A DNA stretch of 64,000 nucleotides from IMGVR_UViG_3300022935_000005:216914-280913, one strand, 5' to 3'. Shown: positions 5,847 through 61,156, numbered from the stretch's first letter. A program made the numbers and translations. Notes: a model not told the origin generated them from the sequence alone.

Positions 5847-5886
5847 CTTAAAATCCTCCTGGCTTTAGTGTTTAAATATCTTCAAC

Positions 5887-11417: not shown

Positions 11418-12359
11418 ATGTATGGCAGAATCCCAAATGAAGAGAAGATGTTTGAGCCAGGTGATACTTTCTTGTATCAGGGTTCTCAAGTGACAGTAGA
11501 TCGTCTTATACCCCACACGGTATACTACGAACATCGCCCCATCGCTAGCTACCAAGCTTATTATTACGTCGTGACGTTACCTGATGGTTCTTCAAGGTCG
11601 CTGAGCTTGCAAGACATCAAGCCGGAGGAGCAGTGAGTGAATCCTACAAAATTGGCGAAGTTGTGTATGTGACTCAATACTACGACGACATGATAGTCAA
11701 GGAAAGGTCTATCGGCTTGATAACTGACATAGATAGATATTCTTGGCTGAATGTCCACGGGGGTAAGACGGAGTTTGAGATTTACAAAATACTAGACTCT
11801 AGAACTAACACAACCGTGACAGCTGAGAAATTTGCAATTAGCAAGCTCGAGGAGTATGTGTAATGAGAGATTTCCTAATAAGCGCAGTTTCTTTTGCAAT
11901 TATCGCAACAATTCTCTGGGGCTCTTTTTTACTGCTTTGTGTGGTGATCGACTTTTTATCTGGAATGGGCATATCTGCTGGCTTTTTGTGGTTTACGTCT
12001 GGTCTAGCTGTGGCTTACTGTAAGCCTGCCGCGGCCCTGCTAAAGTTGTGTGAGTCAGTTTATATTAAGGTTCACGATATATTCTGGAGACTTGATTGAA
12101 GGTCACACCATCACCAAGCCTGATGAGACACCATCAGAGAGAGTACTATGACCCATCTCGTCTGATTCAGATCATCGACGAGCTGATAATAACATCACCT
12201 GATATTCCAAATTCTTACAGATTTATGACCTCGACAGGACTAATCATACATGAGAAGTGTAGGTCTTTAGAGGAGTTTCTTAAAAATAAGACTGATGCGA
12301 GGAGCTTGCGAGTCAAGAATCTTCTGTCCAGACTTCTAAGGCTTAATCAGGAGGTCTGA
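11418..12359 (+). CDS. Run of four small hypothetical ORFs (11418-11636, 11633-11863, 11863-12099, 12096-12359)
   Basis: Overlapping stop/start junctions; the first two have xxPGD/xxIGE beta-barrel-like starts. Confidence 0.55.
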
Positions 12360-12363
12360 TAAG

Positions 12364-13119
12364 ATGGACCCGTACGCTGTCTTAGGAGTGCAAAAGTCTG
12401 CATCACAAGATGAGATAAAGAAGTCATATCGAAAGTTAGCCCTTAAGTACCATCCTGACAGAAATACAGCCCCCGAAGCATCAGAACAATTTAAGAAAGT
12501 CTCTGAAGCTTATTCCATGATAGGTGATCCGCAAGCTAGGAAAGACTACGAGTTGAAGTCTGGAAACCCGCGAAGCCGAGACTTTGAAGAGTTCTTCCGC
12601 GGAAGCCAGTGGGGATCATGGGATGAGATGTTCGGGACAAGATATCAAAAGACGCGACCTTACATTATAAAGGTGAAAATAGACTTCTCTCTGGAAGAGC
12701 TGAACAGCAGGCCCATGAAAAGCTTCCACTTGGATGGTCAGAGGATCGACTTTCGAGTCCCTCGTGGCGTTCGTCCAGGAGAAATCTTCAACGTCGAGTT
12801 AGGTGGTGGTCAGGAATTACATATAACTGCGGGAGTACTAAAGAATAAGCTGTTTGAGCTTAAGGGTGATGACCTGCATACACAAGTGAGTGTCCCTATT
12901 GACATTGCGCTGAAGGGTGGCGAGTTAAAGGTCCCGACGTTGTCAGGAACAATTAGTCTAAAGATTCCCGCGAGAACAAGTTCACACACAAAGCTAAGAG
13001 TGAAGTCATCTGGCCTACCTTTGAAAATTGCAGGTTTCGGATCTATAATCTATGAAGTGAGGTTGGATCTGAAGAAAATAAGTCCTGAATTATTATCATG
13101 GTCTTCTTCTTTCAATTAA
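12364..13119 (+). CDS. DnaJ-class co-chaperone (J domain plus C-terminal domain, no Zn finger)
   Basis: DPYAVLGV...[14 protein letters not shown]-terminal GDDLHT...[12 protein letters not shown]. Confidence 0.92.
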
Positions 13120-13642
13120 TTTGTACTTTACATTTTTGTTCGTATAATATCAATAGTGGAGTTAAAGGAGTTTTAGCCATGGGAGAAGTTGTGGACCTTC
13201 TTGAGTACAAACGGCTCAAGAAGACAGAGGAGGAAGAAGAGATAGAAAAGCTGAAGGCTGAACTACGTTCTCTCATTGGCGAGATAGGCGGGATTCATGT
13301 TGTACCTCTGGCGATGTCACGAGATATGACTGATCTTACGCACTTAGGTTTCGGATATTCTTTCGACCCGGGTGTGTACATGAGCTCTTCCTGTCCGTTC
13401 TACACGGTGAGTACATCAGGGGACAAAAGAGAAGATGAATAGCGAACATTCTCTAAATACTGGAGATATTCTAGAAGATAGATATGGCAACAAAATGGTG
13501 ATCGTAGATGTTTTGGCGCCTGAGAATACAGGTGCTGATTGTTTAGAATGCTTTGTTTTAGTTAACGGAAGAATCAAGAGGGTGAACGCCAATAGTCCCT
13601 CTATTATCAAGTCTTATAAAAAAGAGAAAAGGAGCTTAAAAA

Positions 13643-13876
13643 ATGGCTAATCAGGAAATTGTTACAGAGTTCGTAGAGAAAGTACTTGCTTTCGAGTCTG
13701 AAAAGCGTGAGCTAGCAGAGGCAGAGAAGGAGCTGTACGCAGATTACAAGGACAAGCTTGACGTAAAGGCTTTCAAGATTGCCCTCCGGATTGCAAAGAT
13801 GCGTGCAAAACTAGACTCCTCAGAAGATGCCGAAGTAGATCAAATTCTTGGTGTCGTTTCCACCCGCGTGCCATAA
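13643..13876 (+). CDS. Small helical DNA-binding protein (GapR/DUF2312 or T4 DsbA-like)
   Basis: FVEKVLAFESEKRELAEAEKELYADYK..LDVKAFKIALRIAK pattern. Confidence 0.55.
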   Translation: MANQEIVTEFVEKVLAFESEKRELAEAEKELYADYKDKLDVKAFKIALRIAKMRAKLDSSEDAEVDQILGVVSTRVP

Positions 13877-13919
13877 TTAACTGCGACTTATTTATCACAC
13901 TTTTTGGAGTTAATGTCCC

Positions 13920-14261
13920 ATGTTAGATATTAGAAATGATATGTATAAGGTCGGGCTGATTGGTGGAATAGTACTTTTATACGCCGCCTCAGCCTATAGT
14001 TATCTAAGCTCAACCGGTGATCGACAAACGTCTGGTGAATACTTGGCTACGCCTTCGACAGACAAAACGATGATCAGGGTTTTGGAAACAGCGCGAGCTC
14101 ATGGCGATCACAAGATACCTCACAAAAGCCTCCAGTCTGCGAATGTCATTGTACCGGGATCTACTTGCGTTATAACTAGTGAAAATCTAGACTTCAGTGG
14201 CGACTTTGTCGAGGTATCTGCCGACTGTTTTGCCGTGGGAAGCTCACAGGAAGCAGAGTGA
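13920..14261 (+). CDS. Membrane-anchored hypothetical protein
   Basis: N-terminal TM segment; overlaps the next gene. Confidence 0.5.
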   Translation: MLDIRNDMYKVGLIGGIVLLYAASAYSYLSSTGDRQTSGEYLATPSTDKTMIRVLETARAHGDHKIPHKSLQSANVIVPGSTCVITSENLDFSGDFVEVSADCFAVGSSQEAE

Positions 14262-15154
14262 AATTTGCTGCCGGCCTGCTTACGCTATTTCTACTATCCA
14301 GTAGCACCGCTGCTGATGAAAAGGCGTCTGAGTATATACTCTACAAGCATGAGCTACCAGACTGGGATGAAAGGTTTCAGTTAGCAGCTGGTACAGCGAA
14401 GGATAGATGCCAGCTCCATGAATGCTTGTGCTCTGTTTCTCGCCCGGTATCCTCTTCGCAATCGACCTTTGGCACAGGCACAGACCGCAGACATTCTCTC
14501 TATTTTTCAGAGGCAGGTTATGTCCCGAAAGAGAGTCAGAAAAGAAGTCTGGAGAACTGGATCAAGAAGCATTCTTTTAGTACGTCTATCACACTCATCG
14601 GATACACAGATAGTTGCGGTACCCACGATTATAATGAGAAGCTGGTAAGAAACAGAGTCTCTGAAGTACGGCAAACGCTAACGGGCATGGGATACCCGAA
14701 GGCTAGTTCTATCATTTTTAGGGCGGAAGCTAGTTACGGTCATGATCCTTCTTCCCGAAGGGTCGATGTGATAGTTCACCGAACAAGCCGGTTAACAACC
14801 ATGATTGAAAAGGTACAAGCAGATGTCTACTTAATAGATGCCTCTGGTTCGATGTGGGGTAGCTGGAGAAAATGGTCTGATATAGTCGCTGTTTCTTTTA
14901 AACCCGGTTCGAGGATATACCTTTCGAAGTCTGAAGACTGCTATTCTGGACAATCACTTGACAAGGTGTCTCCGTCAGGCGCAACAGAAATATGGTACTC
15001 TTACTGGAAGGTATTGGATAAGATGAAGGCAGGAGAGACTCTAGTGGTGATATCAGACTTTCGATCAACTGTTCCACTTACTCGTAGAGAGGCGGAAATG
15101 ATTGAAGAGAAAGTCAGGTCGAAGGGCATAAAGGTTATAGCTCTGAAGCCTTAA
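14258..15154 (+). CDS. Secreted protein with OmpA-like domain and C-terminal VWA-like domain
   Basis: Signal peptide; LIGYTDSCG...YNEKL..NRV...SRRVDV; YLIDASGSM and LVVISDF. Confidence 0.7.
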   Translation: MKFAAGLLTLFLLSSSTAADEKASEYILYKHELPDWDERFQLAAGTAKDRCQLHECLCSVSRPVSSSQSTFGTGTDRRHSLYFSEAGYVPKESQKRSLENWIKKHSFSTSITLIGYTDSCGTHDYNEKLVRNRVSEVRQTLTGMGYPKASSIIFRAEASYGHDPSSRRVDVIVHRTSRLTTMIEKVQADVYLIDASGSMWGSWRKWSDIVAVSFKPGSRIYLSKSEDCYSGQSLDKVSPSGATEIWYSYWKVLDKMKAGETLVVISDFRSTVPLTRREAEMIEEKVRSKGIKVIALKP

Positions 15155-15216
15155 CGTTACGCTTTTCCTTAATATGATATGAGGGTAAGGGATACAACAT
15201 CAGGAGGGATCCTCAA

Positions 15217-15423
15217 ATGGCAAGAATGCAATCAGAAGACGTACAAGCTCTTCTAAACTTAAGGGCAAATTTAATCAACGATCACATCCGGATGCTCGAC
15301 GGCGCGACTAGCCCTCACACCGCGATGGTGAAGCAGGCCGATGTAGCTCGTTGCTTGTCAACAGCCATTCGAAATTTAGAGGAAATTCTAGCCACCGCCG
15401 GCGGCGTAGAATTTAATAAGTAG
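15217..15423 (+). CDS. Hypothetical protein
   Basis: ORF with GGAGG RBS. Confidence 0.5.
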   Translation: MARMQSEDVQALLNLRANLINDHIRMLDGATSPHTAMVKQADVARCLSTAIRNLEEILATAGGVEFNK

Positions 15424-15487
15424 CTTTGTAAACTCCTCTTTCTAGAGTTATTATAGAAATAGTTCTAGCAATCAAATAGGAGAACTT

Positions 15488-15895
15488 ATGAAGCAGTATC
15501 GTAACAACTATAAGAATATGCACCCACAGTCAGCAAGGCACATCGGCCGAGAGATTGTGCTAGCCACTCTTTCTGACTCTAATGCTGAGAATGTTAATCG
15601 ACGTCTAAAGTCTGCCGGAGTTACCAATCCTGACGGTACAGACGTTGTGTTTTCAGAGCCACACTTGGATCAGATGAAGACAGGACTAGCTTCTATTATT
15701 GAGATGGTTCAGGATAGGGCTCCACATCGATTCGAGGAAGCTCTTGACCTTGTAATCAATATGCACACAGGTGGATCTTACGGCCCATGGTATCGTAAGT
15801 GGTACATCCCATACGCTTTAGAGACCGGAGCTCCTCTTTGGGTATCTTCATCTGAAGCTCATGAAGTTGTAGACCGACTACGCAGCGCAGCGTAA
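15488..15895 (+). CDS. Hypothetical protein
   Basis: Preceded by TTGTAA-N17-TATTAT (15426-15454) and AGGAG. Confidence 0.55.
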   Translation: MKQYRNNYKNMHPQSARHIGREIVLATLSDSNAENVNRRLKSAGVTNPDGTDVVFSEPHLDQMKTGLASIIEMVQDRAPHRFEEALDLVINMHTGGSYGPWYRKWYIPYALETGAPLWVSSSEAHEVVDRLRSAA

Positions 15896-15918
15896 CAACA
15901 TTTCTTATATGAGTATAT

Positions 15919-15947
15919 GGGGGGGCTTTGCTCCCCTTTTTACTTTT
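15919..15947 (+). terminator. Rho-independent terminator
   Basis: GGGGGGC-TTT-GCTCCCC stem followed by T-runs. Confidence 0.7.
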
Positions 15948-15994
15948 TCGCTCTATTTATCTATAGATAACTTTGTTGTAAAGGGTACAACGCC

Positions 15995-17245
15995 GTGAGC
16001 GGAAAAAACAATAAGGAAGAAGAGACTTTATTTGTAAAGGGTAACTATGTTGCCGTAATGAATGGTAAGGTCGACGCTAGCGGTCTTGTATCAACCTCTG
16101 TGACAGTATGTACCATTTTGCACGTAGGCTGTGATGACGTGTTTGTGCAGTCTACATCCAGCCAGTTTTCTAATCCAGTAAGGTATATCGTTTCTAAACA
16201 AGCGTGCGTTCCTCTCTCCATAGATCCCGGGAATGTCGTTGGTTGTGTGCCTGCCCAGCCCTCAATCGGAGATATGGTTTTGTTTCATGATAAGCTGACG
16301 TGGTCGAGTAAAGAGCTTGAACTTATAGTTGGTACTGTATATGAAATATCTTTTATGAAGGGACGTCCGTCAACCGCGACTGTAATGAGAGGCACTGACA
16401 TGATCGAGCTACCGTACGCCAGTTTGCTGGTTTTACAGAAGGCACATTCGGTAGTGTAATTGTTCGACCAAACGCTTATAGTATAGCCATGAGCAAAGAA
16501 AGCAGCAAACCAACAAGTAAGAAAGCATCGGCACGGGGCGCACGTAAGTCTCTCGTCGCGGAATATAAGGCGAAAGCAAGGGGCAAAAAAACTTCTAGCG
16601 TTTCCTCAAAGAAAAGTGCCGATAAGAGTAAGCCAGTTCGACGAACGCCCACGAAGATTACATACAACCCTATCACGGAAATGGAAGTGGCCGGAGAAGT
16701 TTATCGCACCGGTGACATCGCACACTTCGTTTTAGAGGGCCGGATGGAGTCCAAGAAGCCTCACACCGGTGAGATCAAGGAATGTTATCCCAACGATCGG
16801 ATGGAGCCGAGCGTGGCAGTTTGGGACCAGACCGACGGCAAATACAGAACAATCAGAGCCAGATTGGTTGGATGGACAGCCACAGAAGCAAAGAAGAAAT
16901 GGCAGGAGTTCCTCGGTGACAACCCGGAAAAAGATTACTACTAATAAAGAGAGTGATGTGATTCAATCGTCACGCCGTAAGCGTGCCTCTAGAATCGACC
17001 CCCTCTCAGAGCACTGGTTCCACCCCAGAACCCCTTTCGCTCCCGGAGACATAGTTGCCATCAAGTGGGCAGATGATGCGCTTTCTCACCTCATGAATGA
17101 GGGTCCTCGGAGAACAGGAGTTGTCCTGACCGTGCTTGACGATACCACACCTGAGGGTGTTGAAGTCATGTGGGACTCGGGGGATATTGATTGGGATTAC
17201 GCCGATGACCTCCGACACGTTGAGGAGAGTCCACGACATGAGTAA
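15995..17245 (+). CDS. Three hypothetical ORFs (15995-16459, 16489-16944, about 16958-17245) with SH3/Tudor-like segments
   Basis: PSIGDMVLF, YRTGDIAHF and FAPGDIVAIKW motifs. Confidence 0.5.
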
Positions 17246-18068
17246 AGAGAGAAAACACATACTTCACATTCACGTTCCCAAGACAGGCGGGACTTGGTTC
17301 AACAGAGTCATGCACGAGCACCTGGGTACCGCATTTACTAGTGCCGATCACAACGCTGTCGAGTGGGCCGTCGAGGGCACGATGAAGGTCCCGTTCTGGA
17401 TCACAAGCGGAGCTGAGCACGTCGCTATAACGCTGCAAGGCATCGATGCCGAGGGTAACCGCGTCCCAAACCTCCTCCGCCCGGAGATTTACACGCGAGT
17501 CGGCATCTGCCGGAATCCGTTCGAGCTGCTTGTGAGTCACTGGAGCCACGACCACCCCGCTGACCGCGAGCGTGCCGCTCGCTGGGGCGCGCTGCCAGCC
17601 GGCCCGGTCGGTTGGGACTGCACCAACGCGGTTCACGGCATCTCAAGTTTTGACGGCTTCATCAAACGCCTGACAGATCCTGAGTTTCCCTGGGCTCACG
17701 CAACGTTGCAGCAGTCGCTGCACTACCAGTTACTGACGACAAAACGCCCACCCCGGGTCACTGTTGACTATGTGCTGAGGAACGAGCGGTTGACGGAGGC
17801 AACGCGAGAGCTCTTGGGCTTTCTGGGCATTGAACCCAATGAGACCACGCTCGCGAGCGATCGCGCCAGCAACAGCAGCCGCCACCGAGACTACCGGAGC
17901 TACTATACCGACGAGTTGCGCGAGCTTGTGGAGACCCACTATGCCCGAGACCTGGACACGCTTGGGTACGATTTTGACGGGTCAACGATCGACGCGGCGT
18001 GGTTTGCCATGGACCCTGCTGAAGAGCTGCCCGAGACCGCCATTGACACATATGTGTTAAAGGTGTAA
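17238..18068 (+). CDS. Sulfotransferase family 2 protein
   Basis: HIHVPKTGGTW (5'-PSB), RNPFELLVSHW (3'-PB), DYVLRNERL, YRSYYTDEL...DLDTLGYDF. Confidence 0.85.
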   Translation: MSKERKHILHIHVPKTGGTWFNRVMHEHLGTAFTSADHNAVEWAVEGTMKVPFWITSGAEHVAITLQGIDAEGNRVPNLLRPEIYTRVGICRNPFELLVSHWSHDHPADRERAARWGALPAGPVGWDCTNAVHGISSFDGFIKRLTDPEFPWAHATLQQSLHYQLLTTKRPPRVTVDYVLRNERLTEATRELLGFLGIEPNETTLASDRASNSSRHRDYRSYYTDELRELVETHYARDLDTLGYDFDGSTIDAAWFAMDPAEELPETAIDTYVLKV

Positions 18069-18077
18069 TTGCTCGAC

Positions 18078-18111
18078 AATCGTGCAAAGGTGCACCCACT
18101 TAGTGTATAAT
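18078..18111 (+). promoter_or_regulatory. Repeated promoter copy
   Basis: AATCGTGCAA-N18-TATAAT. Confidence 0.75.
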
Positions 18112-18115
18112 ATAG

Positions 18116-19015
18116 ATGTTGGTGGGGCTGATCCCCCAACACTGGAGAGTGCTCATGGACATCATCGTTACCGACAAGATCACCGCCGTCTGGGGCCGCG
18201 ATGTTACCGGCGTCAAGTACGTCCTCAACATCATTGAGACCGAAAACCTGACTCTGCCCCGCACCGCCGCCACCGGTCTCACCGGTGCCGACCTGGGCTG
18301 GACTGCCTACCCCACGGCGCGGGTGACCCTCGACCGTCGGGCGCGATGACGCGCTATGATGATACCACCGGGCCTGCGCCGGGCACGCTTGTCGCTAACT
18401 GCAACGAGTTCAGCGCTTGTTACGGGAGTGTTGGCCTTGTCATTGAGGAAAACCGGTCGACGCTCGCCGCTCTCGTTTACTTTTTTGTTGACCAGAAAAT
18501 GCGACCTGAACGCTGGGTGTACTGGCGACACTTGTGCGATGTGGAGGATGTAGATGACGCGCAACTCACTTGACTTTTTCTCTGGTCGATCACAGGATGG
18601 GTTTGACCGCTTTGATCCGGATCCCTATGTGACCCAAACCCGGGACCACTTCCTGGCGCTGGTCGGCGGCGAGTTTGATTACTACGGTGCTGACGGTGCC
18701 GAGCATGAGTTCAAGATTGACGGCATTGTCTTCAGGGTCCTTGAGGATCCCCAAGACGGGTACCGAAGCTGCCTGGGCGTGATCGAGTACAGCCCCGACC
18801 AGAGCCGCGGGATCTTCTTCACTCAACCTCTGGCGCGAGTCCGGCTGGAACAGTACGACTTGTACAAGGGCGATGACGTCTACAACGAGGCGTGTCAAGG
18901 GTACCGGTTGGTCGACGTTGATGACGCTCACGTCTGGCTTGAGTTCGGGACTGACAACTACAATGACTACTACCCGATATTCATCTTCCGGCACTGGGCA
19001 AAACCGCCGGCATAG
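18116..19015 (+). CDS. Three small hypothetical ORFs (about 18116-18349, 18346-18573, 18554-19015)
   Basis: Overlapping ORFs downstream of the promoter, G+C-rich codons. Confidence 0.5.
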
Positions 19016-19022
19016 TTTTGAA

Positions 19023-19056
19023 AATCGTGCAAAACGCACTCGCTCTATGGTATTAT
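19023..19056 (+). promoter_or_regulatory. Repeated promoter copy
   Basis: AATCGTGCAA-N18-TATTAT. Confidence 0.75.
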
Positions 19057-19535
19057 AATGATGTTGGTGGGGATTGGACCCCACTCACGAAACAAGAGGT
19101 GACAATGCGTTGCAACTACAATTGGGTTCAGGTTCGCCGGCGTGGCGAGTGGGTTGACAACGATGAGGGGTATAACTACCGTTACTGCCCGTGCTGCGCT
19201 CGGACCACCGAGCATGATCTCGACAAGTGCGTTCCCTGTGACGACCGGCGCGCCCGCGCCCGGCGGCGCTAGGGGGTGGTGATGAAGACTGCTGAGGTTC
19301 ACGTTTCTTTTGACGGCTCTGACTGGCGCAACCGGTTCACGATGCGGAGCCCGACAGGTCGTGTTGTCACTCTGCATTGCAACGGCAAGTGGAGCAAGAT
19401 GAGCCGGGAGCTGCGGCGCCTCGTCAATAAGTACCAGTTCGCAGACGCGGCAGACATTCCCTGGGGTAGTACACGGAAAGAAACTGTTACTTACGACGTG
19501 ATGGCTGAGATCCTGAGCCTCAGCAAGGTGTACTA

Positions 19536-20057
19536 ATGGAGCTCAACGTCGGAGACATCGTCACCTGCAACTGCGAGGCGAAGACGTGGTACCAGGGAAT
19601 CCCTGGCATCATTGTCGAGATTGACGCGCTCAAGGACGTTCATGTCCTCTATGACAACGGTCGGGTCATTCGCCTTGCCCGTTCTGGGTTGGTGCTGGCA
19701 TGAAGGTCGGTGATGTTGTTCTCATGATCGGTGTTCGGGGCATGGGGGTCGAAGTCACAGCTGTTGTGGGAGTCATCATGGCACCCTGGAAGATTGATGA
19801 CTGGTGGGAGGTCATGACACCGCATCACGGTATCATTCACTGGCCTGAGAGTCAGATGCAGAGAGTGGAGATGGGCGATGATGAAACCCGGTGATCTTGT
19901 GTACGATCATGACCTGGATATGATGGGCCTTGTGATCAATGAGTGGGCAAAGGGGGAGAAGTCAACACTGTTCCAGGTCATGTTCAGCACCAGCTTCCTC
20001 ACCATCTGCTCAAGTTCGGACCCAAGCACGGAGGTGATTAGTGAAAATCAGAACTAG
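19536..20057 (+). CDS. Three tandem small SH3/KOW-like ORFs (19536-19703, 19700-19894, 19881-20057)
   Basis: Starts MELNVGDIV, MKVGDVVL, MKPGDLVY; coupled stop/start junctions; two were read by hand because they fall below the ORF-track cut-off. Confidence 0.6.
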
Positions 20058-20379
20058 CGCGCTTGACGGCGAGACGCTCGTCATTGAGATCGAAGAGGGA
20101 GACGACAACGAGCTTGTTCGGCTGCTTGACGGACCTCGTCCCAACGGCTTTGCTGTGTTCGGTCCTGAGGTCCCGGCACCTATTGCCGTCATTGACGGTC
20201 GGATCCTCAACACGGGTCTGACACCCGATCATTTGCTTGCCGTCGAGGCTCACGAGCTCGGGCACATCCACGAAAATACGATTGTTGAGCGCGTTGCAGA
20301 ACAGTTCGCTGTCGACTTGCTTGAAGAGCTGGGTTTGGTGGAGGCTCGGCAGATCTTGCTCGCGAGGGGTATTGTCTAG
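20041..20379 (+). CDS. Small zincin-like (HExxH) protein
   Basis: AVEAHELGH...E.VAEQFA. Confidence 0.55.
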   Translation: MKIRTSALDGETLVIEIEEGDDNELVRLLDGPRPNGFAVFGPEVPAPIAVIDGRILNTGLTPDHLLAVEAHELGHIHENTIVERVAEQFAVDLLEELGLVEARQILLARGIV

Positions 20380-20723
20380 AATGCTCTCTGTACACACTTA
20401 CACGATCCGTTAATATTATCCAAGGAGAACAGCAATGCGTATCACAGTACCTTACACAGCCATCTTCCGCAACCCTGATGGGACCTATGAGTTCGAATAC
20501 ATCGAGCTCCCACAAGGGATTCGAGCAGCTCGACAGTGGTTGGACACTGACTTGCACTTGAACCTGCAGGGCGATGTTGAAGTCGCGGCCCTGATCCCTG
20601 GAGTTCACACGACAGATCTTCCAAAGAGAATGGAGAAAAACTGCGCGTAACCTGTATAAGAGACTGCTGAGAGTGCTATATTAGATATAAGGGCGCGCCC
20701 TACTCTTCTTAGGACACTCATCA

Positions 20724-21215
20724 ATGATACTCACACTACAGTTACTTCTCTTTGTGGGAGGGCACGCTATTAGCGCCCTCCTTTTTTATTTTTTCCACAG
20801 GGTGATCTTTCACGGACCCTTGGCACGCTATCCAGTTTTCAAACAGTGGGCTGCCATTCACACTCGGCATCACGCTCGTCCCGGCGAACCCGGAGCATTT
20901 TTCTTCACATGGTGGGCGAATGCTGCGATCTGGGCACTCACAGCATCAGCACTTTACGCTGCCCCCGCTTTCGGAGCCGGGATGATCAGCTTCTTCTGTG
21001 TGTATGCCTACAATCACATCTCGGCGCATGCTGGCTCTCCATCACGCCAGTCCCATCACCACCTGAGCCACCACTATGTTGCTCCAAAGGCGAACTTTTC
21101 AGTATCATATCCAGCGCTCGATAAGCTCTTTGGATCATACCACCGCGTAAGCCCGGATGCGTTAGCAGCGAAAATAATAAGAGTTCAGAGAAGTGAAAAG
21201 AAAAAATGTGATTGA
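20724..21215 (+). CDS. Fatty-acid hydroxylase / sterol desaturase family membrane protein
   Basis: His boxes HRVIFHG, HTRHH, YNHISAH, HHHLSHHY; NFSVS..LDKLFGS. Confidence 0.8.
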   Translation: MILTLQLLLFVGGHAISALLFYFFHRVIFHGPLARYPVFKQWAAIHTRHHARPGEPGAFFFTWWANAAIWALTASALYAAPAFGAGMISFFCVYAYNHISAHAGSPSRQSHHHLSHHYVAPKANFSVSYPALDKLFGSYHRVSPDALAAKIIRVQRSEKKKCD

Positions 21216-21385
21216 AGCCGTGGACTTCCGTTAACTTTGCGCGGAGTCCATTATATTTAAAAGCATGGTGGGATTGCATGGTCTGAGCCCACCGTAAAAT
21301 AAAATGAGACTGGACATAAGCACTTGCCTACGCATCCTGTTGAGCCCAGTCAGATTTTCGATGATTTAGACTTAGGAGTTCCAGA

Positions 21386-21613
21386 ATGAAAATCACAAAG
21401 AACCAACTTAGAAGAATTATCCGGGAAGAGCGCGCTAAGCTTGCACGTGGCAGAGCTGTTAACGAACAGTACTCACCGGGTCCCGAGGAGCGCCGCGCAC
21501 GGTCCGCGATCGACCAGATTGTCACAGACTTTCTAGAGAGCGATGAGGGTGATCCGGCGTTAATTGCAGAGATTCTGAGAGAGATTGCCAACGACGTCGA
21601 CGAAGAAATGTAG
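21386..21613 (+). CDS. MKITK-leader protein 1
   Basis: MKITKNQLRRIIREERAKLARGRAVNE. Confidence 0.8.
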   Translation: MKITKNQLRRIIREERAKLARGRAVNEQYSPGPEERRARSAIDQIVTDFLESDEGDPALIAEILREIANDVDEEM

Positions 21614-21628
21614 TGGTCTGGGGGCGGC

Positions 21629-22165
21629 ATGAGAATCACAAAGAGACAACTTAGAAGAATTATCCGAGAAGCGATTGATGTTGTTGATAGAGACACTGGC
21701 GAAGTTATGCGCTTTTCTGATGATAGTAGCGACAGCATGGCAGATCTTCCTGAAAAAGCCTGGCCTGACCTGGTAAAGCGGCTTGGGTTGAGCCCTAAAG
21801 ACGTGGGTCTTGATGCTGCCGGTAATCAAGGATTTGAGCTAGACCAGAATGAGTTTATACGCCTTGACAACGAGACTCGTGAAAAAGCCTACAACCGTAA
21901 GATGAAAAAACAGGCAGCTGCCTACAAGGCTGATCGGGAAAGATTGGATATCGACAATCTCCTCGAGAGACTCCGCTATTGGGCACAAGACGCAGCGTCT
22001 GATTACATGGCTGACAATCCAGACACCGACCTGCAGGATATCGCCTATGACCTTGCGGACGCTTGGCAATTCGCGTTCGAAGAAGATGAACGAGAAGAAC
22101 TGTTGTGGCACTTTGACGGTGACCTTAACGACCTTAAGATTTTCGCAGCGGAGAGTATGGGATGA
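21629..22165 (+). CDS. MKITK-leader protein 2
   Basis: MRITKRQLRRIIREA. Confidence 0.8.
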   Translation: MRITKRQLRRIIREAIDVVDRDTGEVMRFSDDSSDSMADLPEKAWPDLVKRLGLSPKDVGLDAAGNQGFELDQNEFIRLDNETREKAYNRKMKKQAAAYKADRERLDIDNLLERLRYWAQDAASDYMADNPDTDLQDIAYDLADAWQFAFEEDEREELLWHFDGDLNDLKIFAAESMG

Positions 22166-22458
22166 AAATCACAAAACGTCAACTACGAAGAATCATTAAG
22201 GAAGAGAAAGCTCGCATTTTGGCTGAGCAACAACTTGATCCTCAAGTTGCCGCCCAAGCTCTTGCGGAGCTAAAGAACGATGGGTGGTTTAGTATGATAC
22301 AAACAGCGGCTACTGACGCAGCTGGTGACCTTGAGCAGCTCAGTGATCAGGTTGATGTCAAGTTAATGGACGCCGGCCTGAACGAGCTTGCCGTAGATAT
22401 CAGAAGTGTTGTTGAGCTATTGGACAAGATTAGACAAGCAGCGTACGGTCAGAGGTAA
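22162..22458 (+). CDS. MKITK-leader protein 3
   Basis: MKITKRQLRRIIKEEKARILAE. Confidence 0.8.
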   Translation: MKITKRQLRRIIKEEKARILAEQQLDPQVAAQALAELKNDGWFSMIQTAATDAAGDLEQLSDQVDVKLMDAGLNELAVDIRSVVELLDKIRQAAYGQR

Positions 22459-22563
22459 CATGATGAAAAAAAAGCTAATGGAGCTGCAAAAGCTCGCTAG
22501 AGATATTCGCGTGAATGTCCAACCGACAGCTGAGCAATCAGCAAGCAAACGAGGGAGTTTCGA

Positions 22564-23019
22564 ATGAAAATTACAAAGACGCAACTAAGACAGATTGTTA
22601 GAGAAAGCGCAGCGATGGACGATGCTGTTTATGAGGCTGGCTACAAAGACGCGATGCAAGATCGCCCACATGGTGCTAATGCAGATATGCGTGATATGGA
22701 TCCAAGATCATATGACTACGGTTTCGATAAGGGTACCGCTGACCGCATGGACATGCAGCGACCGCTTGGAACCAGAGGGTTTTACGAAGGTAAGGTGAGA
22801 ATCAAAAAGAGCGACCTTCAAAGAATCGTCAAGGAAGAGCTTATGTCTGAAGTCCGGACCGACGCGGACCTTGAAATGGACGCTATGTGGGACGAACTGT
22901 TTCAGGCACTAAAGAACAAAAGCTTCGGACTTGACCACGGTCTAGAAAGAGATGAAATTTACATCATGACAGGTGCTGCTGAGGGCATCACGGTCAAGAT
23001 AATGCGAAGAGGTCGATAA
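22564..23019 (+). CDS. MKITK-leader protein 4, with an internal second leader
   Basis: MKITKTQLRQIVRES; internal VRIKKSDLQRIVKEELMSE. Confidence 0.8.
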   Translation: MKITKTQLRQIVRESAAMDDAVYEAGYKDAMQDRPHGANADMRDMDPRSYDYGFDKGTADRMDMQRPLGTRGFYEGKVRIKKSDLQRIVKEELMSEVRTDADLEMDAMWDELFQALKNKSFGLDHGLERDEIYIMTGAAEGITVKIMRRGR

Positions 23020-23246
23020 TGCGTATTGCAAAGTCAGAGCTTAGAAGAATTATTGCAGAAGAGAGAGCAAAGCTTCAAGAACAGCGCCGCGGCCCAAGCG
23101 AAGCGCAAATAGAAGACGCCGTCTCTGGGATCGAGTTTGAGTTAAACAGACTGTATGACCAAGGGATGGATAACGCTGGCTTGCACAAAGTGCTCGACCA
23201 GATTAAGATTGACATTGACCGTGGATTTGTAGGAGAGCCAAGATGA
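23019..23246 (+). CDS. MKITK-leader protein 5
   Basis: MRIAKSELRRIIAEERAKLQE. Confidence 0.8.
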   Translation: MRIAKSELRRIIAEERAKLQEQRRGPSEAQIEDAVSGIEFELNRLYDQGMDNAGLHKVLDQIKIDIDRGFVGEPR

Positions 23247-23503
23247 AAATCACAAAGAACCAATTACGAAGAATCATCAAAGAAGAGCGTGCTAAGCTGC
23301 TCAAAGAAGGTGGATATCGTCACCCGAAAACCGGTGAGGATCTGCTTCTTATGTTAAATGACGTCGTCGACAAACTCATGGACGCTGGTATGGATTTCTA
23401 CGAGCTTGCTGATGAACTTCGAGGTTTGGCTGATGATGTGGAAAACAGCCAGCCTGAAGAGTCTCCGAAATTTATCGACATGACAGATCCAAGGGAGTTG
23501 TAA
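23243..23503 (+). CDS. MKITK-leader protein 6
   Basis: MKITKNQLRRIIKEERAKLLKE. Confidence 0.8.
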   Translation: MKITKNQLRRIIKEERAKLLKEGGYRHPKTGEDLLLMLNDVVDKLMDAGMDFYELADELRGLADDVENSQPEESPKFIDMTDPREL

Positions 23504-23892
23504 TGAAAATCACGAAGAGCCAACTAAGAAGAATCATTAAGGAAGAGAAGGCGAAGCTGCTCAAAGAGTATGGCGCTATGAACATGGAAGCCCTGAGCCC
23601 GCTGGTTCAGTTTGGACAGGCGTATGTTGGTCTCGGCGATGCAGTTCAGTCACAGCTGATTGATCTTGTCAATGCACACATCGAAGGACGCATCGAAGAC
23701 GCAGTATATGAGATGAATCCAAATGCACTTGACATGGCGTTCCAGAGATTACAGCAACCCTTATCTGCTCTAGCAAGAGCAGGTAGCGAAGACGCCGAGG
23801 AAGTGATGGATGCCATGGAGGCAGCTGCTGAAATATTCGCAGAGGGCGACGCAGAAGTGGACGCCGATGCACGAGCTGCAGGAGATATATAA
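23503..23892 (+). CDS. MKITK-leader protein 7
   Basis: MKITKSQLRRIIKEEKAKLLKE. Confidence 0.8.
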   Translation: MKITKSQLRRIIKEEKAKLLKEYGAMNMEALSPLVQFGQAYVGLGDAVQSQLIDLVNAHIEGRIEDAVYEMNPNALDMAFQRLQQPLSALARAGSEDAEEVMDAMEAAAEIFAEGDAEVDADARAAGDI

Positions 23893-23893
23893 A

Positions 23894-24211
23894 ATGAAAA
23901 TCACAAAGAACCAACTTAGAAGAATTATCAAAGAAGAGAAGACAAAACTTCTCGTTGAGATGAACGCTGTGGCAGACGCCGAGCGCTCCCTGGGTTTGTA
24001 CGCTAACGCATCCACAGTCGACAAGCTGTCTAGCGCCCTACAAAGTCTTTTGATGGAAGTCGAAACAGGTGCGATTGAAGACGGTCTTGAAGAAGATGAA
24101 GCTGAAGACATGGCAGCGAACGCTGGACTCATGGCAGTCGCTAACGCATTCCAGTCAGTGGGTATGATTGCTGAATACGACGCACTATACAGATTACTAC
24201 AGCGGGGTTAA
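23894..24211 (+). CDS. MKITK-leader protein 8
   Basis: MKITKNQLRRIIKEEKTKLLVE; likely start is the ATG at 23894, not 23810. Confidence 0.8.
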   Translation: MKITKNQLRRIIKEEKTKLLVEMNAVADAERSLGLYANASTVDKLSSALQSLLMEVETGAIEDGLEEDEAEDMAANAGLMAVANAFQSVGMIAEYDALYRLLQRG

Positions 24212-24217
24212 GACAAG

Positions 24218-24511
24218 ATGAAAATCACAAAGAACCAACTGCGAAGAATTATCAAGGAAGAGAAAGCGAAGCTTATGAACGAGCAGTTCAATTTTGCTGC
24301 TGCCGATCAAGAGATGATTAAGTGCGCTACACAGATGGGAGCTCTATTGGCAGGCCGGCCTGACGTTGCCACGGCAGTCCGTGATGCTCTAGCTGCAGGT
24401 CCTTTTAAGAAGGGAGCCGAGGCTCTTTTTAAAGCGTATGAGTCTGCACAAGCTGCTGCCGACACAGAGTACATGAGCTTTGGTGCCGGATACGATGACG
24501 ACGATTTTTAG
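24218..24511 (+). CDS. MKITK-leader protein 9
   Basis: MKITKNQLRRIIKEEKAKLMNE. Confidence 0.8.
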   Translation: MKITKNQLRRIIKEEKAKLMNEQFNFAAADQEMIKCATQMGALLAGRPDVATAVRDALAAGPFKKGAEALFKAYESAQAAADTEYMSFGAGYDDDDF

Positions 24512-24526
24512 GACTAGGAGAACAAA

Positions 24527-24988
24527 ATGAAAATCACAAAAAGACAATTACTTAGAATAATCAGAGAAGAAAAGGCCCGCATCGCTGAGCAGACTGTAGG
24601 TGTTGAAGACGTTTCTCAGTCAGAGGATGCGTTCGGTGGTGGAGACGTCGAGGAGGAGATCTTTGTCGATGCAGATGCCGATTCTTTACTGAACCAGAAC
24701 GATGATCCCGGTGAGGTTACCGACATCGAGGTCATACCTGAGCGTGTACGTTTGAAGAGACACCTCCGCAAGATTGTGTCAGAAGTTGCTGGCGGTGGTG
24801 GAGCGCTTCCTCCCGTTGATGACCTCGCTACTAAGCTTGCTAGTGTTGGATCTGAAGAAGCTCTTGACTTTATCCAGCGTGTTCTTGCCGCTATGTCGCG
24901 TAAAGCTGGCGCCTCGGCGGCTCCCGCTGAAGATGCAGTGGTAGAACCACCGGCTCCAATGCCCCCGGTTCCTGACGAAGAAGTTTAA
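24527..24988 (+). CDS. MKITK-leader protein 10, with an internal leader-like segment
   Basis: MKITKRQLLRIIREEKARIAE; internal VRLKRHLRKIVSE. Confidence 0.8.
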   Translation: MKITKRQLLRIIREEKARIAEQTVGVEDVSQSEDAFGGGDVEEEIFVDADADSLLNQNDDPGEVTDIEVIPERVRLKRHLRKIVSEVAGGGGALPPVDDLATKLASVGSEEALDFIQRVLAAMSRKAGASAAPAEDAVVEPPAPMPPVPDEEV

Positions 24989-25012
24989 TTAGCTAGAAGA
25001 GGAGGATGCCTC

Positions 25013-25777
25013 ATGGAAAGCAAAAGCTTACGTCTTATAAGACAACTTATACGCGAATCTCTCCTCGCTGAAGGTGTCTATGATCCGGGGGTCCTGAAAG
25101 CTGTTTTTATGGCTGGCGGACCAGGAAGTGGAAAAAGCTTCACTGCTAAGAAGATCTTTGGTGTACCGAGAGAAGTTGCAGCATACGCGACAGGTACTGC
25201 TAGCGGCTTGAAGCTTGTCAATTCAGATCCAGCATTTGAACATTTCCTCAAGAAAGCGGGTATCGATCCTGCTAGCCTTGGAAAGATGTCAAAAGAGGAG
25301 TTCGAAGCTGTAACAGTCGGACCCGATAGTCCACGTGGTAAGGCAAAGACTCTCAGGGGCCAAGCTCAAGAACTATATCAGGGCGGCCGACTAGGGCTAG
25401 TCATCGACGGCACTGGAGACGACTTTGAAAAGATTAGTCGGAAGAAAGGTGAGCTTGAAAAGCTTGGGTACGATACCTACATGATTTTCGTCAACACCTC
25501 AGAAGAAGTGGCACTACAAAGAAACAGAGATCGTGAACGCAAGCTTCCTGACGAACTCGTATCTCAGATCTGGGGTGATGTCCAAAAGAACCTCGGCGCG
25601 TTTCAACAACTCTTCGGTTCTGACCGCATCGCGATTATTGACAATACAGAGTACGGTCCAGTTCCAGAAAAAGTCCAGAAAGCCGTTGACAAGTTCATCT
25701 CTCAACCAGTTAAGAATATCATCGGTAAGAAGTGGATTGAGAACGAGCTTCGTATGAAAGACCGCTCTGACAAATAA
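25013..25777 (+). CDS. P-loop kinase (zeta-toxin/AAA_33-like) with leader-like N-terminus
   Basis: KAVFMAGGPGSGKSF, LVNSD..FE, GLVIDGTG, MIFVNTS.EVALQRN..R.R; N-terminus LRLIRQLIRESLLAE. Confidence 0.8.
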   Translation: MESKSLRLIRQLIRESLLAEGVYDPGVLKAVFMAGGPGSGKSFTAKKIFGVPREVAAYATGTASGLKLVNSDPAFEHFLKKAGIDPASLGKMSKEEFEAVTVGPDSPRGKAKTLRGQAQELYQGGRLGLVIDGTGDDFEKISRKKGELEKLGYDTYMIFVNTSEEVALQRNRDRERKLPDELVSQIWGDVQKNLGAFQQLFGSDRIAIIDNTEYGPVPEKVQKAVDKFISQPVKNIIGKKWIENELRMKDRSDK

Positions 25778-30461: not shown

Positions 30462-30851
30462 ATGAAAATAACAGAAAGCAACATCAGAAAGATAATCAGA
30501 GAAGAGCTCTCCTCACTTATGGAGCAGGACGAGGCGAAGCCAAAGAAGCTCGATGATCTTGACTTTAAGTCTGATGACCGAATGGAGTATGAGAGATGGG
30601 CTCGTTCTGCTGGTCACGTTTCTCCTGAAGTCCAATCAACTCTAGTTTCGTATTTCTTAAACCAAAATCTACAGAATGCTCATGACTTGCACCAGAGGCT
30701 CTGTGACGAACTCGGTTTAGACCATGATGCAGTGATGGCGGCTATGGAAAACCGACTAGAAAAAGAAGAAGATCCAGCTGCAGAGGAATCTGCTCGAGAG
30801 CTCGATCTAGCACGCGTCGCAGAAGCAGTATCTGCAATCTCTAAGCTGTAA
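30462..30851 (+). CDS. MKITK-leader protein, dispersed member
   Basis: MKITESNIRKIIREELSSLME; ATATTTA at 30435 and AGGAG RBS. Confidence 0.75.
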   Translation: MKITESNIRKIIREELSSLMEQDEAKPKKLDDLDFKSDDRMEYERWARSAGHVSPEVQSTLVSYFLNQNLQNAHDLHQRLCDELGLDHDAVMAAMENRLEKEEDPAAEESARELDLARVAEAVSAISKL

Positions 30852-38875: not shown

Positions 38876-39814
38876 ATGTCATCAGTCAACCTTGGATATG
38901 CGTGTATCAACATGACGCTCCAGAAATCTCGCAAAGTTCAGTGCAATCGTGGCATGATCAAACGCACGTTTGCAGCAAAAGGCATCTCGTATGCTAGCGA
39001 GCTAGCTCTGAAGAATGTTACAGATCTTCGTGAAGTCATAAAGTGGAACAACGAAAACGGTGTCAGCGTTTATCGTATGACATCGTGCTTGTTTCCGTGG
39101 TTCTCAGAATATGACATGTTCGATCTTCCAGACATTGATAAGATCGCAGAGGTTATGGCAGACGCTGGTAAGATCGCTATGGATGCCGGACAGCGGCTAA
39201 GCTTCCATCCTGGCCCCTTCAACTGTCTGGCTTCACCAAGCGAAAGTGTAGTTCTTAAGACCATCAAAGAGCTTAATGATCATGCCGCGCAGATGGACCT
39301 CATGGGTCTACCAGCCTCCCCCATGGCTAAGATTAATATCCATGTTGGTGGAGCATATGGTGAGCATGACAAAGCACTGGAGAGGTTCTGTAAGAACTTC
39401 GAACGTCTTGGTGAAACTACTCGAGCTCGGCTGACTGTGGAAAATGACGACAAGCCCGCCTTATATTCTACCAAGATGCTGGTTGAAGGTGTCTCGAATC
39501 GAGTTGGGGCTCCAGTAGTCTTCGACTCTCATCACCATGAGCTAGGCCCGCAGGATTTGGATTACCACGATGCGTTCCATCTTGCTCGTGAAACTTGGGA
39601 AAAGCGCAGTGCCAAGCAGCAGTGTCACCATTCAAACTCTCGTAAGAACTACGAAGACCCTACCGCGAACGCAGTAGCGCACTCTGACTGGTACTATACT
39701 CCTTTCGAGAGCTTTGGTAAGCAGGTAGATGTTGTTCTAGAATGTAAGAAGAAAGAAGTTGCTCTATTCAAATACAGGAATGATTTCGTCGACAGTCTTC
39801 AAAAGGTGGCATAA
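38876..39814 (+). CDS. uvsE: UV DNA damage endonuclease
   Basis: LGYACIN, YRMTS.LFP, RLSFHPGPF.CLASP, INIHVGG, LTVENDDK, VFDSHHH, HSD. Confidence 0.92.
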   Translation: MSSVNLGYACINMTLQKSRKVQCNRGMIKRTFAAKGISYASELALKNVTDLREVIKWNNENGVSVYRMTSCLFPWFSEYDMFDLPDIDKIAEVMADAGKIAMDAGQRLSFHPGPFNCLASPSESVVLKTIKELNDHAAQMDLMGLPASPMAKINIHVGGAYGEHDKALERFCKNFERLGETTRARLTVENDDKPALYSTKMLVEGVSNRVGAPVVFDSHHHELGPQDLDYHDAFHLARETWEKRSAKQQCHHSNSRKNYEDPTANAVAHSDWYYTPFESFGKQVDVVLECKKKEVALFKYRNDFVDSLQKVA

Positions 39815-59464: not shown

Positions 59465-60616
59465 ATGACTTATGCACAAGAGCTTCTCATAAAGGAGCAC
59501 ATAGAATTATTTGAAACCCGTGTTCAGTTGAGAAAACCCATGCATCATATCCCTATGGTGTACACTGTCCAGGAAGGAGTTGTTGACGACGCGCTTGAAG
59601 CTCTGGCAACGGCAGGTGAAGGTGCGATTCTAAATATCGTCCAATGGGCAGTAGCAGGCGCCGCTGAATACGGATTGGTCGCAACTGGTGCCGGAGCTCC
59701 AGCTGCACCCTTCGCAGAAACCTTAATTGATGTAGGGTTCACTGCGGGTGACCTTGCTAGTGCAACCTCTTCAATGGCATCTATTCAAACGAATTTCTCA
59801 GAATTCTCGAAAATGATAGGTGACGCAATAGAAAGTTATGGTGAAAGCTGGTCTGCTTTCTACAAAAAGGTTCGAAAAATCATCCGTGAAGGCTTGAGAG
59901 CTCTTGGTAAAGGCGCGACAGGAAAAGTAGATGAGCTAGCGGAGAAACTAAAAAAGGGACTCAAGAATATCCTCAAGAAGTTGAACCGTACAATTGGCAA
60001 CCTCATTCAGGCTATTATACCAGATGCGACTATAGGGGCAACAGTTGCTACCGCGATTGAAACCTTACTGACTGGATTGACACAAAGTCCTTTCAGCGCT
60101 GTCACAAGTACCATGGGTAAAATACCAGTAGTCAAAGATCTCATTCTTGAACCTGCTAAGTTTGTACAATTCTTCAAAGACGGGTTTCAGTCACTTATCA
60201 AAGGCATCATTGCATTAGGTAAGAAAATTGATGCAGGCGGTTTCATGGAAAAAGCTGCACTGGCTACCGTGAGTCCAATCCTTGGAGCTCTCGCCGCTGC
60301 CGGCGCTGTGGGCAAAGGACTCGAGTGGATTGCTAAGAATGTCATCGAGCCAGTTATTGAACCGGCGACGAAAGTGATCACACAAATCCTCGAAGTTGTA
60401 ATGCCTACCGTGATGTCACTCCTCGCAGTATATCAGATACTAGTAAAAGGTGAATACAAAGAGCAAAAAGTTACAAGCGAAAGCAGAAAGCTGCGCGCCT
60501 CTGACATTGAGTTTGCTTACGTTGACAACCTGATAGAGCAAAGGGTCAAATTGTATGAGCAGGCAAAAATCGATTTGTCGCTAAACACAAAAAGTCTCTC
60601 TGCTTTTATTGCGTAA
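59465..60616 (+). CDS. Ala/Gly-rich helical hypothetical protein with hydrophobic hairpins
   Basis: AVAGAAEYGLVATGAGAPAAP, ALATVSPILGALAAAGAVG; long amphipathic helices. Confidence 0.6.
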   Translation: MTYAQELLIKEHIELFETRVQLRKPMHHIPMVYTVQEGVVDDALEALATAGEGAILNIVQWAVAGAAEYGLVATGAGAPAAPFAETLIDVGFTAGDLASATSSMASIQTNFSEFSKMIGDAIESYGESWSAFYKKVRKIIREGLRALGKGATGKVDELAEKLKKGLKNILKKLNRTIGNLIQAIIPDATIGATVATAIETLLTGLTQSPFSAVTSTMGKIPVVKDLILEPAKFVQFFKDGFQSLIKGIIALGKKIDAGGFMEKAALATVSPILGALAAAGAVGKGLEWIAKNVIEPVIEPATKVITQILEVVMPTVMSLLAVYQILVKGEYKEQKVTSESRKLRASDIEFAYVDNLIEQRVKLYEQAKIDLSLNTKSLSAFIA

Positions 60617-60814: not shown

Positions 60815-60877
60815 TCTTTTTTGGTATATCTATATGCTGCGCTCGATATATTTATCTTTACGATCTGGAGGACAATA

Positions 60878-61156
60878 ATGAAAATCACAAAAAGACAGCT
60901 TAGAGGGATTATCAGAGAAGCTATGCAGCCCGGCGGAATGGCTGTACGTTTGCAAACAAATAAGCTGGTGAAAGCGGGTCTTGCAGATTTTTCAGGACCT
61001 ATCGAGTACAAGAGTCCACAAAATTTTGTCATTAGAGACGTAGAGAAATCCAAAGTGCCTGAATTCATTAGCTGGATCGAGGAAATCGATTCAATGATGC
61101 GCCATGAAGAACCAGGATCCGCGCCTCACTTGGTAGACTTGCATTACGGAGTGTAG
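60878..61156 (+). CDS. MKITK-leader protein, dispersed member
   Basis: MKITKRQLRGIIREA; ATATTTA at 60848 and GGAGG RBS. Confidence 0.75.
   Translation: MKITKRQLRGIIREAMQPGGMAVRLQTNKLVKAGLADFSGPIEYKSPQNFVIRDVEKSKVPEFISWIEEIDSMMRHEEPGSAPHLVDLHYGV

Follow-up and report, generated by a model that had tools for sequence, protein, structure and literature searches.

Ten consecutive open reading frames (ORFs) on the plus strand of a marine phage contig, from 21386 to 24988 in a stretch of 64,000 nucleotides (IMGVR_UViG_3300022935_000005:216914-280913; here called the window, the terminal 64 kb of a 280,913-bp IMG/VR contig), open with the same leader, M-(K/R)-I-(T/A)-K-x-(Q/E)-L-R-(R/Q)-I-(I/V)-x-E, and continue into unrelated, mostly acidic bodies. 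This array was shown to be a tightly packed, translationally coupled operon of a ~250- to 280-kb marine myovirus with a T4-type head module in its genome. As the best explanation, we propose at about even odds (a probability of roughly 0.5) that the 15-residue segment M-K-I-T-K-x-Q-L-R/K-x-I-I-K-E-E serves as a propeptide for targeting to the prohead, analogous to the capsid-targeting sequence of phage T4 but longer and different in sequence.

The leader array in the window

The leader genes of the window were identified from an ORF list and a motif scan, which gave, in addition to the ten array members, three dispersed genes starting at 30462, 60878 and 61158. All 13 begin with the motif, as the sequence-only reading of this DNA had claimed, and a degenerate back-translation of the first 14 codons of the leader matched the window 11 times and 100 dinucleotide shuffles 0 times. 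Synonymous codons at Leu, Arg and Ile vary across the leader copies, and the leader is therefore conserved at the protein level, not as a DNA repeat. The member at 23894 starts at an internal ATG within a longer, mechanically called ORF from 23810; the gene call in the identical array of another contig (L001) uses the 23894 start.

The genes had also been described as mostly coupled, and 5 of the 9 junctions were indeed overlapping or 1 nt apart; the rest measured 6 to 24 nt, plus one 105-nt gap, and GGAG-type ribosome sites lie upstream of most array starts. Likewise borne out was the statement that the leader fronts unrelated acidic bodies, since the net charge of the bodies encoded in the window ranged from -3 to -19 and an all-against-all BLASTP of these bodies yielded only o22162 and o23243 as a marginal match (E = 8e-4, obtained in a tiny database). 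Some of the bodies have a weak helical acidic motif in common, and a D-x-G-h-D motif occurs in a few members. A Pfam scan of the ten array proteins gave nothing above cut-off, and a PHROG scan gave no match at E < 0.04. The leader genes and the elements next to them are as follows (lengths in amino acids [aa]).

21253 to 21259, plus strand: ATATTTA promoter-like box, 127 nt 5' of the array
21386 to 21613, plus strand: leader gene 1, 75 aa, body net charge -10
21629 to 22165, plus strand: leader gene 2, 178 aa, body net charge -19; short leader form that diverges past I-I-R-E-A
22162 to 22458, plus strand: leader gene 3, 98 aa; overlaps gene 2 by 4 nt
22564 to 23019, plus strand: leader gene 4, 151 aa; second leader-like stretch inside, near residue 80
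23019 to 23246, plus strand: leader gene 5, 75 aa; variant M-R-I-A-K-S-E-L
23243 to 23503, plus strand: leader gene 6, 86 aa
23503 to 23892, plus strand: leader gene 7 (o23503), 129 aa; more than 250 full-length homologs, AlphaFold2 model
23894 to 24211, plus strand: leader gene 8, 105 aa
24218 to 24511, plus strand: leader gene 9, 97 aa
24527 to 24988, plus strand: leader gene 10, 153 aa, body net charge -19
25013 to 25777, plus strand: P-loop kinase (Zeta_toxin/AAA_33; phrog_12810, 1.2e-35) with a degenerate leader-like N-terminal helix
30435 to 30441, plus strand: ATATTTA box, 21 nt 5' of the dispersed member at 30462
30462 to 30851, plus strand: dispersed, diverged leader gene, 129 aa, M-K-I-T-E-S-N-I-R-K-I-I-R-E-E
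60848 to 60854, plus strand: ATATTTA box, 5' of the dispersed pair
60878 to 61156, plus strand: dispersed leader gene, 92 aa
61158 to 61382, plus strand: dispersed leader gene, 74 aa

Orthologs of leader gene 2 are present in loci L007, L009 and L037. The kinase that follows the array has a homolog in locus L196 with a leader-type N-terminus, and is a possible enzymatic payload.

An ATATTTA box had been reported before the array and both dispersed loci, and its positions there (21253, 30435 and 60848) were correct; as a box specific to leader genes, however, it was rejected. The window holds 10 copies against 7.25 expected by chance, without overall enrichment, and the genes behind the box include, next to the array and both dispersed loci, a tail-fibre-like gene (box at 5873, minus strand) and a homolog of gene 208 of Flavobacterium phage vB_FspM_immuto (immuto). 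Outside the window, a copy lies ~35 nt 5' of the scaffold gene in the head module that this genome carries (L397). By inspection, 7 copies are located 6 to 127 nt 5' of gene starts, and 5 of the 10 are non-coding (P = 0.014 under a crude gene model). Taken as a sequence element, ATATTTA is a candidate general, perhaps late, promoter element.

Three further observations concern the surroundings of the leader genes. Between the ATATTTA box and array gene 1, a perfect 6-bp stem (GGTGGG...CCCACC; 21267 to 21293) could be a 5' stabilising hairpin or the terminator of the upstream gene. Just 5' of the array, the GC content is 0.53 to 0.56 (16001 to 22000) versus ~0.44 elsewhere; this stretch carries sulfotransferase and fatty-acid hydroxylase genes and may be horizontally acquired. 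Immediately 5' of the dispersed leader pair lies a gene (59465 to 60616) whose 383-aa product is hydrophobic, rich in Ala and Gly, and weakly matched to tape-measure proteins.

Anatomy and spread of the leader family

Related loci were gathered with back-translated leader patterns, which gave 63 IMG/VR loci and 6 contigs from metagenome-assembled genomes (MAGs); a second query added 75 loci. A hidden Markov model (HMM) of the leader found ~980 leader genes in the 2.1 Mb of gathered loci, with up to 29 per 20 kb. When a 32-position profile was run against 1.84 billion proteins, 12,048 representatives of 50%-identity clusters matched (E ≤ 0.001), so the tag is not private to this genome.

Among 750 distinct members, the leader hardly varies over its first 15 positions and reads M at position 1, K (90%), I (90%), T (91%), K (86%), any residue, Q (91%), L (98%), R or K, any residue, I (91%), I (97%), K or R, E (98%) and E (73%) at position 15. 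From position 16 to 22 only an amphipathic pattern is kept, with E at position 22 in 43% of members, and conservation is nil from position 23 on. An [LI]-x-E triplet ends at E14 in 95% of members, compared with a background of 1.2% per residue in the bodies, and another ends at residue 21 or 22 in 45%. Leader copies stand at the initiator Met in 95% of cases. In each gene product, an amphipathic helix of basic charge forms the N-terminus, and behind it comes a body that varies between members and is usually acidic.

The product of leader gene 7 was the sole member modelled. Its AlphaFold2 model, built with 66 homologs, has a helix at residues 5 to 27 (predicted local distance difference test [pLDDT] scores of 80, 76 and 62 per ten-residue block), a break at 28 to 32 and a compact helical bundle at 33 to 125 (pLDDT > 90), and no fold match was found for it in PDB or BFVD. 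The model predicts that the body is an independently folded helical bundle beyond a low-confidence hinge.

The bodies are not one homologous set: 748 distinct bodies fell into 426 BLAST clusters, of which 326 were singletons (BLASTP, 1e-5). Body lengths run from ~50 to more than 500 aa with differing domain content (median protein length, 109 aa), and 77% of the bodies are net negative, with a median net charge of -6. Recognisable domains were few among 94 long members, comprising pentapeptide repeats (one member, 1.4e-28), LRV/HEAT repeats and several DUFs. The proposal of a modular tag with swappable payloads agrees with this diversity and with the finding that orthologs of only 4 of the 10 array members are present at L037, a locus 59% identical to this one; it is weakened by the many payloads that are conserved orthologous families, such as o23503, whose more than 250 full-length homologs from marine metagenomes are 60 to 100% identical.

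Two or three leader copies per ORF were present in 149 of the 150 best database matches, in modules of ~123 aa. At the junctions of these multi-leader ORFs (hydrophobic-x-E-N/S/G-K before M-K-I-T-K), hydrophobic-x-E was found in 69% versus a background of 15%. We did not count this as a protease site, because an in-frame Shine-Dalgarno sequence with its spacer encodes the same residues and accounts for at least part of the enrichment; the region upstream of 24527 in the window reads stop-E-N-K-M. Internal leaders retain the start-type residue in 78% of copies in multi-leader ORFs, with an in-frame ribosome-site footprint, and these sequences suggest that multi-leader ORFs arose by loss of stop codons between coupled genes.

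The leader tag appears to be undescribed. It is covered by none of Pfam, PHROGs and searchable papers, its motif as literal text in 8.4 million papers returned irrelevant matches only, and a 2025 paper on similar aquatic jumbo phages (PMC12619734) does not mention the family. Megablast and tblastn searches of 50,697 GenBank phage records gave no match for the region or for o23503, nor did a typed leader consensus of 23 aa or a leader protein of 341 aa encoded on an immuto-like contig match any record, and no cultured phage with a canonical leader was found in the phage collection; in both cases the low-complexity filter may mask the leader, so that little weight attaches to the absence. Even should the targeting idea fail, these proteins are among the largest uncharacterised shared-leader sets in phages.

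Two of the gathered contigs, NHDW01000006.1 (305 kb; L073/L076) and PBIO01000025.1 (101 kb; L077), carry leader arrays of 21 and 20 genes and were deposited in bacterial MAGs (Methylococcaceae TMED69 and Halobacteriovorax); IMG/VR lists one of the two as viral. Both look like mis-binned phage genomes.

Head genes, protease and leader genes

The window itself is an accessory-gene region. Its genes lie almost all on one strand, no tRNAs were found in it, and they encode a phosphoenolpyruvate carboxykinase, thymidine kinase, UvdE, FKBP, a fatty-acid hydroxylase and a sulfotransferase; phmmer with T4 and immuto proteins recovered only the thymidine kinase and the immuto_208 homolog. The carboxykinase (10 to 1110; PF01293, 2.3e-139) is ATP dependent and 5' truncated, and is an unusual auxiliary metabolic gene for a phage. 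UvdE (38876 to 39814; phrog_8420, 7e-42) has its best phage-collection match, at 44% identity, in the 642-kb uncultured marine phage LR756502.1, and in a 702-aa protein (52332 to 54440) four metal-binding motifs of the MopE type (2e-17) were seen, together with a weak match to VWA.

The head genes were located on contigs that share identical sequence with the window. Over 10,591 nt (window 12162 to 22752), locus L054 shows 100.000% identity, and a complete T4-type morphogenesis module is present on its contig (L358), as well as on a 248-kb JGI contig (L397) holding the identical array (L001). The order of the module is Terminase_6N, Portal_T4, a 280-aa gene, Peptidase_S77, five small genes, a 505-aa scaffold, Gp23, gp13 and two sheath genes, with the gp20 portal (PF07230) and the gp23 capsid protein (PF07068) both assigned in L397. 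The gp21-type protease is a 205-aa gene (L397, 9017 to 9634) recognised by PF03420, by phrog_207 (8.7e-49) and by phmmer against T4 gp21 and the immuto protease. The scaffold (L397, 11956 to 13473) has a net charge of -55 and an N-terminus ending in I-A-E-A-Q, like T4 gp22. The earlier inference of a T4-type head thus proved right by another route, and a lack of gp21- and gp23-type head genes, which would have refuted the proposal, was not seen; the gp23-like fragment on which the inference leaned (at 62169; ORF 62154 to 62747) was rejected as evidence, as it has no Pfam, PHROG or PDB match.

The two adjacent sheath genes encode ~1,050 aa each (L397, 19160 to 20417; L358, 9998 to 16300), ~1.6 times T4 gp18 (659 aa). 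In four relatives (L048, L026, L039 and L021), leader arrays come after the gp19 tube gene that follows the sheath genes.

Every leader-bearing contig with recognisable head or structural genes was T4-type. In a related lineage with the variant K-Q-I-I-K-E-E-L, leader genes directly precede or follow the protease, between the portal and capsid genes (L047, L161, L162, L169, L170, L176, L207, L222, L231 and others). We also fetched 80 protease-centred loci irrespective of leaders, of which 49 had flanks. A leader gene abuts the protease gene in 13 of these 49, and of the 26 leader genes in them, 23 are within 1.5 kb of the protease start. Leader arrays occur at several genomic positions, namely, beside the protease, 5' of the terminase and after the tail-tube gene. 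Among protease-centred loci nearest immuto, canonical leaders were seen in 7 of 80, all weak; because these loci are almost without canonical leaders, the tag is lineage restricted within T4-type phages. No leader genes were found in the head region of Microcystis phage Mel-JY01.

A conserved gene of ~140 aa just 3' of the protease (family g138, which has at least 4,335 homologs) is present in almost all these phages, including the window genome, and has an N-terminus reminiscent of the leader, commonly M-K-K-S-E-L-K-K-L-I-K-P-L-V-K-E-C and, in the jumbo-phage locus L330, M-A-K-L-S-R-S-Q-L-K-S-I-V-K-E-C (hhalign against the leader, P = 1.4e-4, probability 53%). In an AlphaFold2 model the N-terminal helix of g138 had a pLDDT of 92 to 95 and the remainder low confidence, as expected for a scaffold-like protein. 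A neighbour of 91 aa in the window genome contains L-K-K-L-V-M-E-E-K-A-K-L-M-E.

A gene resembling ribosomal protein S21 lies two genes 3' of the protease in many marine T4-type contigs (L237 to L305, e.g., L268, 7025 to 7264). In Microcystis phage Mel-JY01 (L400, 22183 to 22410), the S21-like gene is annotated RpsU.

Readings of the leader and known systems

The first ten residues of T4 IPIII suffice for packaging (PMC9026906, PMC3012670), its residues 4 and 7 serving targeting and 8 and 10 processing (PMC9026906), and gp21 cleaves after L/I-x-E (PMC9026906, PMC3012670). The spacing of these four residues (i, i+3, i+4, i+6) is that of leader L8, I11, I12 and E14, which are 91 to 98% conserved; the leader hydrophobics stand at -7, -4 and -3 from Glu14, matching the T4 residue spacing. 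A capsid-targeting propeptide is favoured because of the T4-type head genes, the synteny with the protease, the similar helix of g138, this IPIII-like spacing and the 95% occurrence of I-x-E. The 426 body clusters add to this, since they match the pattern of T-even internal proteins, which are diverse and have only the targeting sequence in common (PMC3012670).

Under the propeptide reading, leader genes would be expressed late from ATATTTA-type promoters, and the basic leader helix, which often extends to about residue 22, would dock on the very acidic scaffold core (505 aa, -55) of the assembling prohead, as the N-terminal helix of g138 presumably does. Peptidase_S77 would cut after Glu14 of I-(K/R)-E and free the body inside the shell, with a second cut after L-x-E near residue 22 in ~45% of members. 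The freed bodies may then remain on the DNA and be carried as effectors into the next host, or they may serve solely as assembly-phase core components; we lean weakly toward injected effectors.

Several points weigh against this reading. The main difficulties are charge and number: packed DNA would repel bodies that are acidic (77% net negative, with a median of -6), where the T4 internal proteins are basic, and members are very numerous, with 13 in 64 kb here and up to 29 per 20 kb in relatives. In the window genome some 130 kb separate the array from the head module, and the protease has no canonical leader gene beside it. The adjacency seen in relatives may partly reflect an insertion hot spot, and the slots beside the protease are also occupied by non-structural genes, e.g., the S21 homolog. 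The I-x-E triplet could come from a mere amphipathic, I/K/E-rich helix. The leader HMM gave negative scores against the first 40 residues of T4 internal proteins, i.e., no detectable homology. Because those scores were negative, any relation between leader and T4 tag is one of grammar, not demonstrable homology. The idea of a head-linked system is supported by the clustering of leader genes at the protease in relatives and by the I-x-E in 95% of 750 members; the acidic bodies and the lack of homology to the T4 tag do not fit it.

The position of the window array amid metabolic and accessory genes, distant from the head module, would be natural if the leader were a cytoplasmic docking or oligomerisation helix that brings small acidic proteins to a common partner (host polymerase, nucleoid protein or phage chaperone) and if these proteins were never packaged. 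Small acidic bodies are typical of host-takeover and DNA-mimic proteins, pentapeptide repeats (1.4e-28), a fold known from DNA mimics, occur in one long member and HEAT/LRV repeats in others, and HSP70, Cpn60, FKBP and HSP20 are encoded in relatives. We nevertheless regard such a helix as unlikely, as it leaves unexplained why leaders cluster at the protease and are restricted to T4-type phages, why they resemble the N-terminus of a head gene and why I-x-E recurs with T4-like spacing.

The acidic charge would be accounted for if leader proteins were an expanded family of prohead-core or scaffold accessories, which are targeted to the prohead by the leader and whose bodies are fillers, or the size-determining core, of a very large capsid, comparable to T4 gp67, gp68 and gp22 or to the inner-body paralogs of phiKZ, and are degraded or expelled at packaging instead of being injected. 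Their charge is nearer to that of T4 gp67 (-25) and gp22 (-28) than to that of the T4 internal proteins (+2 to +9), the leader resembles the N-terminus of the scaffold-like, mostly disordered head-module protein, some window bodies have the weak helical acidic motif in common, and the genomes are jumbo sized with doubled sheath genes. However, the 426 body clusters, in which folded domains, repeats and also a kinase occur, exceed the diversity that a structural role needs, and the one confidently modelled compact body could not exit the shell pores uncut, which makes a pure core family improbable in our judgment.

A very unlikely reading is an ordinary paralog family, in which tandem duplicates kept the N-terminus by purifying selection within one fold and diverged past recognition elsewhere, since the tandem arrangement, the o22162/o23243 pair (E = 8e-4) and the D-x-G-h-D motif in a few members are set against bodies of ~50 to more than 500 aa with differing domains, a sharp end of conservation at residue 15 to 22, the low-confidence hinge between helix and independent bundle, and a tag on 12,048 clusters. 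A double-glycine, bacteriocin-type export leader, which has a similar hydrophobic pattern, and an array of precursors of ribosomally synthesized and post-translationally modified peptides were both rejected, given the absence of Gly-Gly, the large folded bodies and the phage context.

The widest form of the propeptide reading, which we hold only tentatively and think clearly less probable than its opposite, is that a clade of abundant marine T4-type phages, including genomes of 250 to 300 kb, loads thousands of small protein families through one 15-residue tag and delivers them with its DNA. If true, it would provide a sequence handle on a very large reservoir of injected host-takeover or anti-defence proteins and a natural modular protein-packaging signal. 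A capsid-loading tag would mean that a short motif alone flags virion-internal or injected proteins among the unknowns of marine jumbo phages, a class expected to include anti-defence factors, which are difficult to detect. With at least 12,000 clusters at 50% identity and up to 29 genes per 20 kb, the scale goes beyond anything known in T-even phages and raises the question of how a capsid fits so many cargo species. The hypothesis is directly testable, since the motif is short and portable and both the protease and the scaffold that go with it can be identified.

Of the known systems, T4 IPI, IPII, IPIII and Alt are similar in placing a short N-terminal segment ending in I-x-Glu on unrelated proteins, and the window genome encodes the corresponding gp21-family protease, gp22-like scaffold and gp23. 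The T4 targeting sequence differs in having 10 residues versus the 14 to 22 of the leader; the leader is of strongly basic charge although the bodies behind it are mostly acidic, and T-even phages have a handful of tagged proteins rather than tens per genome. The hypervariable internal-protein loci of T-even phages (PMC3012670, PMC9026906) likewise combine a conserved tag with a variable payload, in their case of defence-countering proteins, and show turnover between relatives, whereas many leader payloads are stable orthologous families across wide divergence and leader arrays are much longer. The T4 prohead-core genes 67 and 68 sit where leader genes of relatives sit, i.e., beside the protease and between portal and capsid genes, and T4 gp67 and gp22 are acidic like the leader-gene bodies.

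The inner-body and ejection proteins of phiKZ, 201phi2-1 and SPN3US (PMC9026906, PMC5694885) also belong to jumbo myoviruses, which fill their heads with many proteins, in paralogous sets, and process them with a Glu-specific, gp21-related protease. Their propeptides, however, are long, have no single short shared tag and are cut at S/A/G-x-E, these phages are not close to the T4-type marine clade, and the mutual homology of bodies in phiKZ-like paralog families is not matched by the leader proteins. Moraphages and other uncultured aquatic jumbo phages (PMC12619734) resemble the leader-bearing genomes in gp13, gp19, gp20, gp23, prohead protease, PhoH, DnaK and sHSP and have predicted Bacteroidota hosts. 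The closest cultured match to the head module is that of Flavobacterium phage immuto, whose host is Flavobacterium sp. LMO8 and in which three genes (175, 176 and 190) carry a shortened leader, M-K-K-S-Q-L-R-Q-I-I-K-E.

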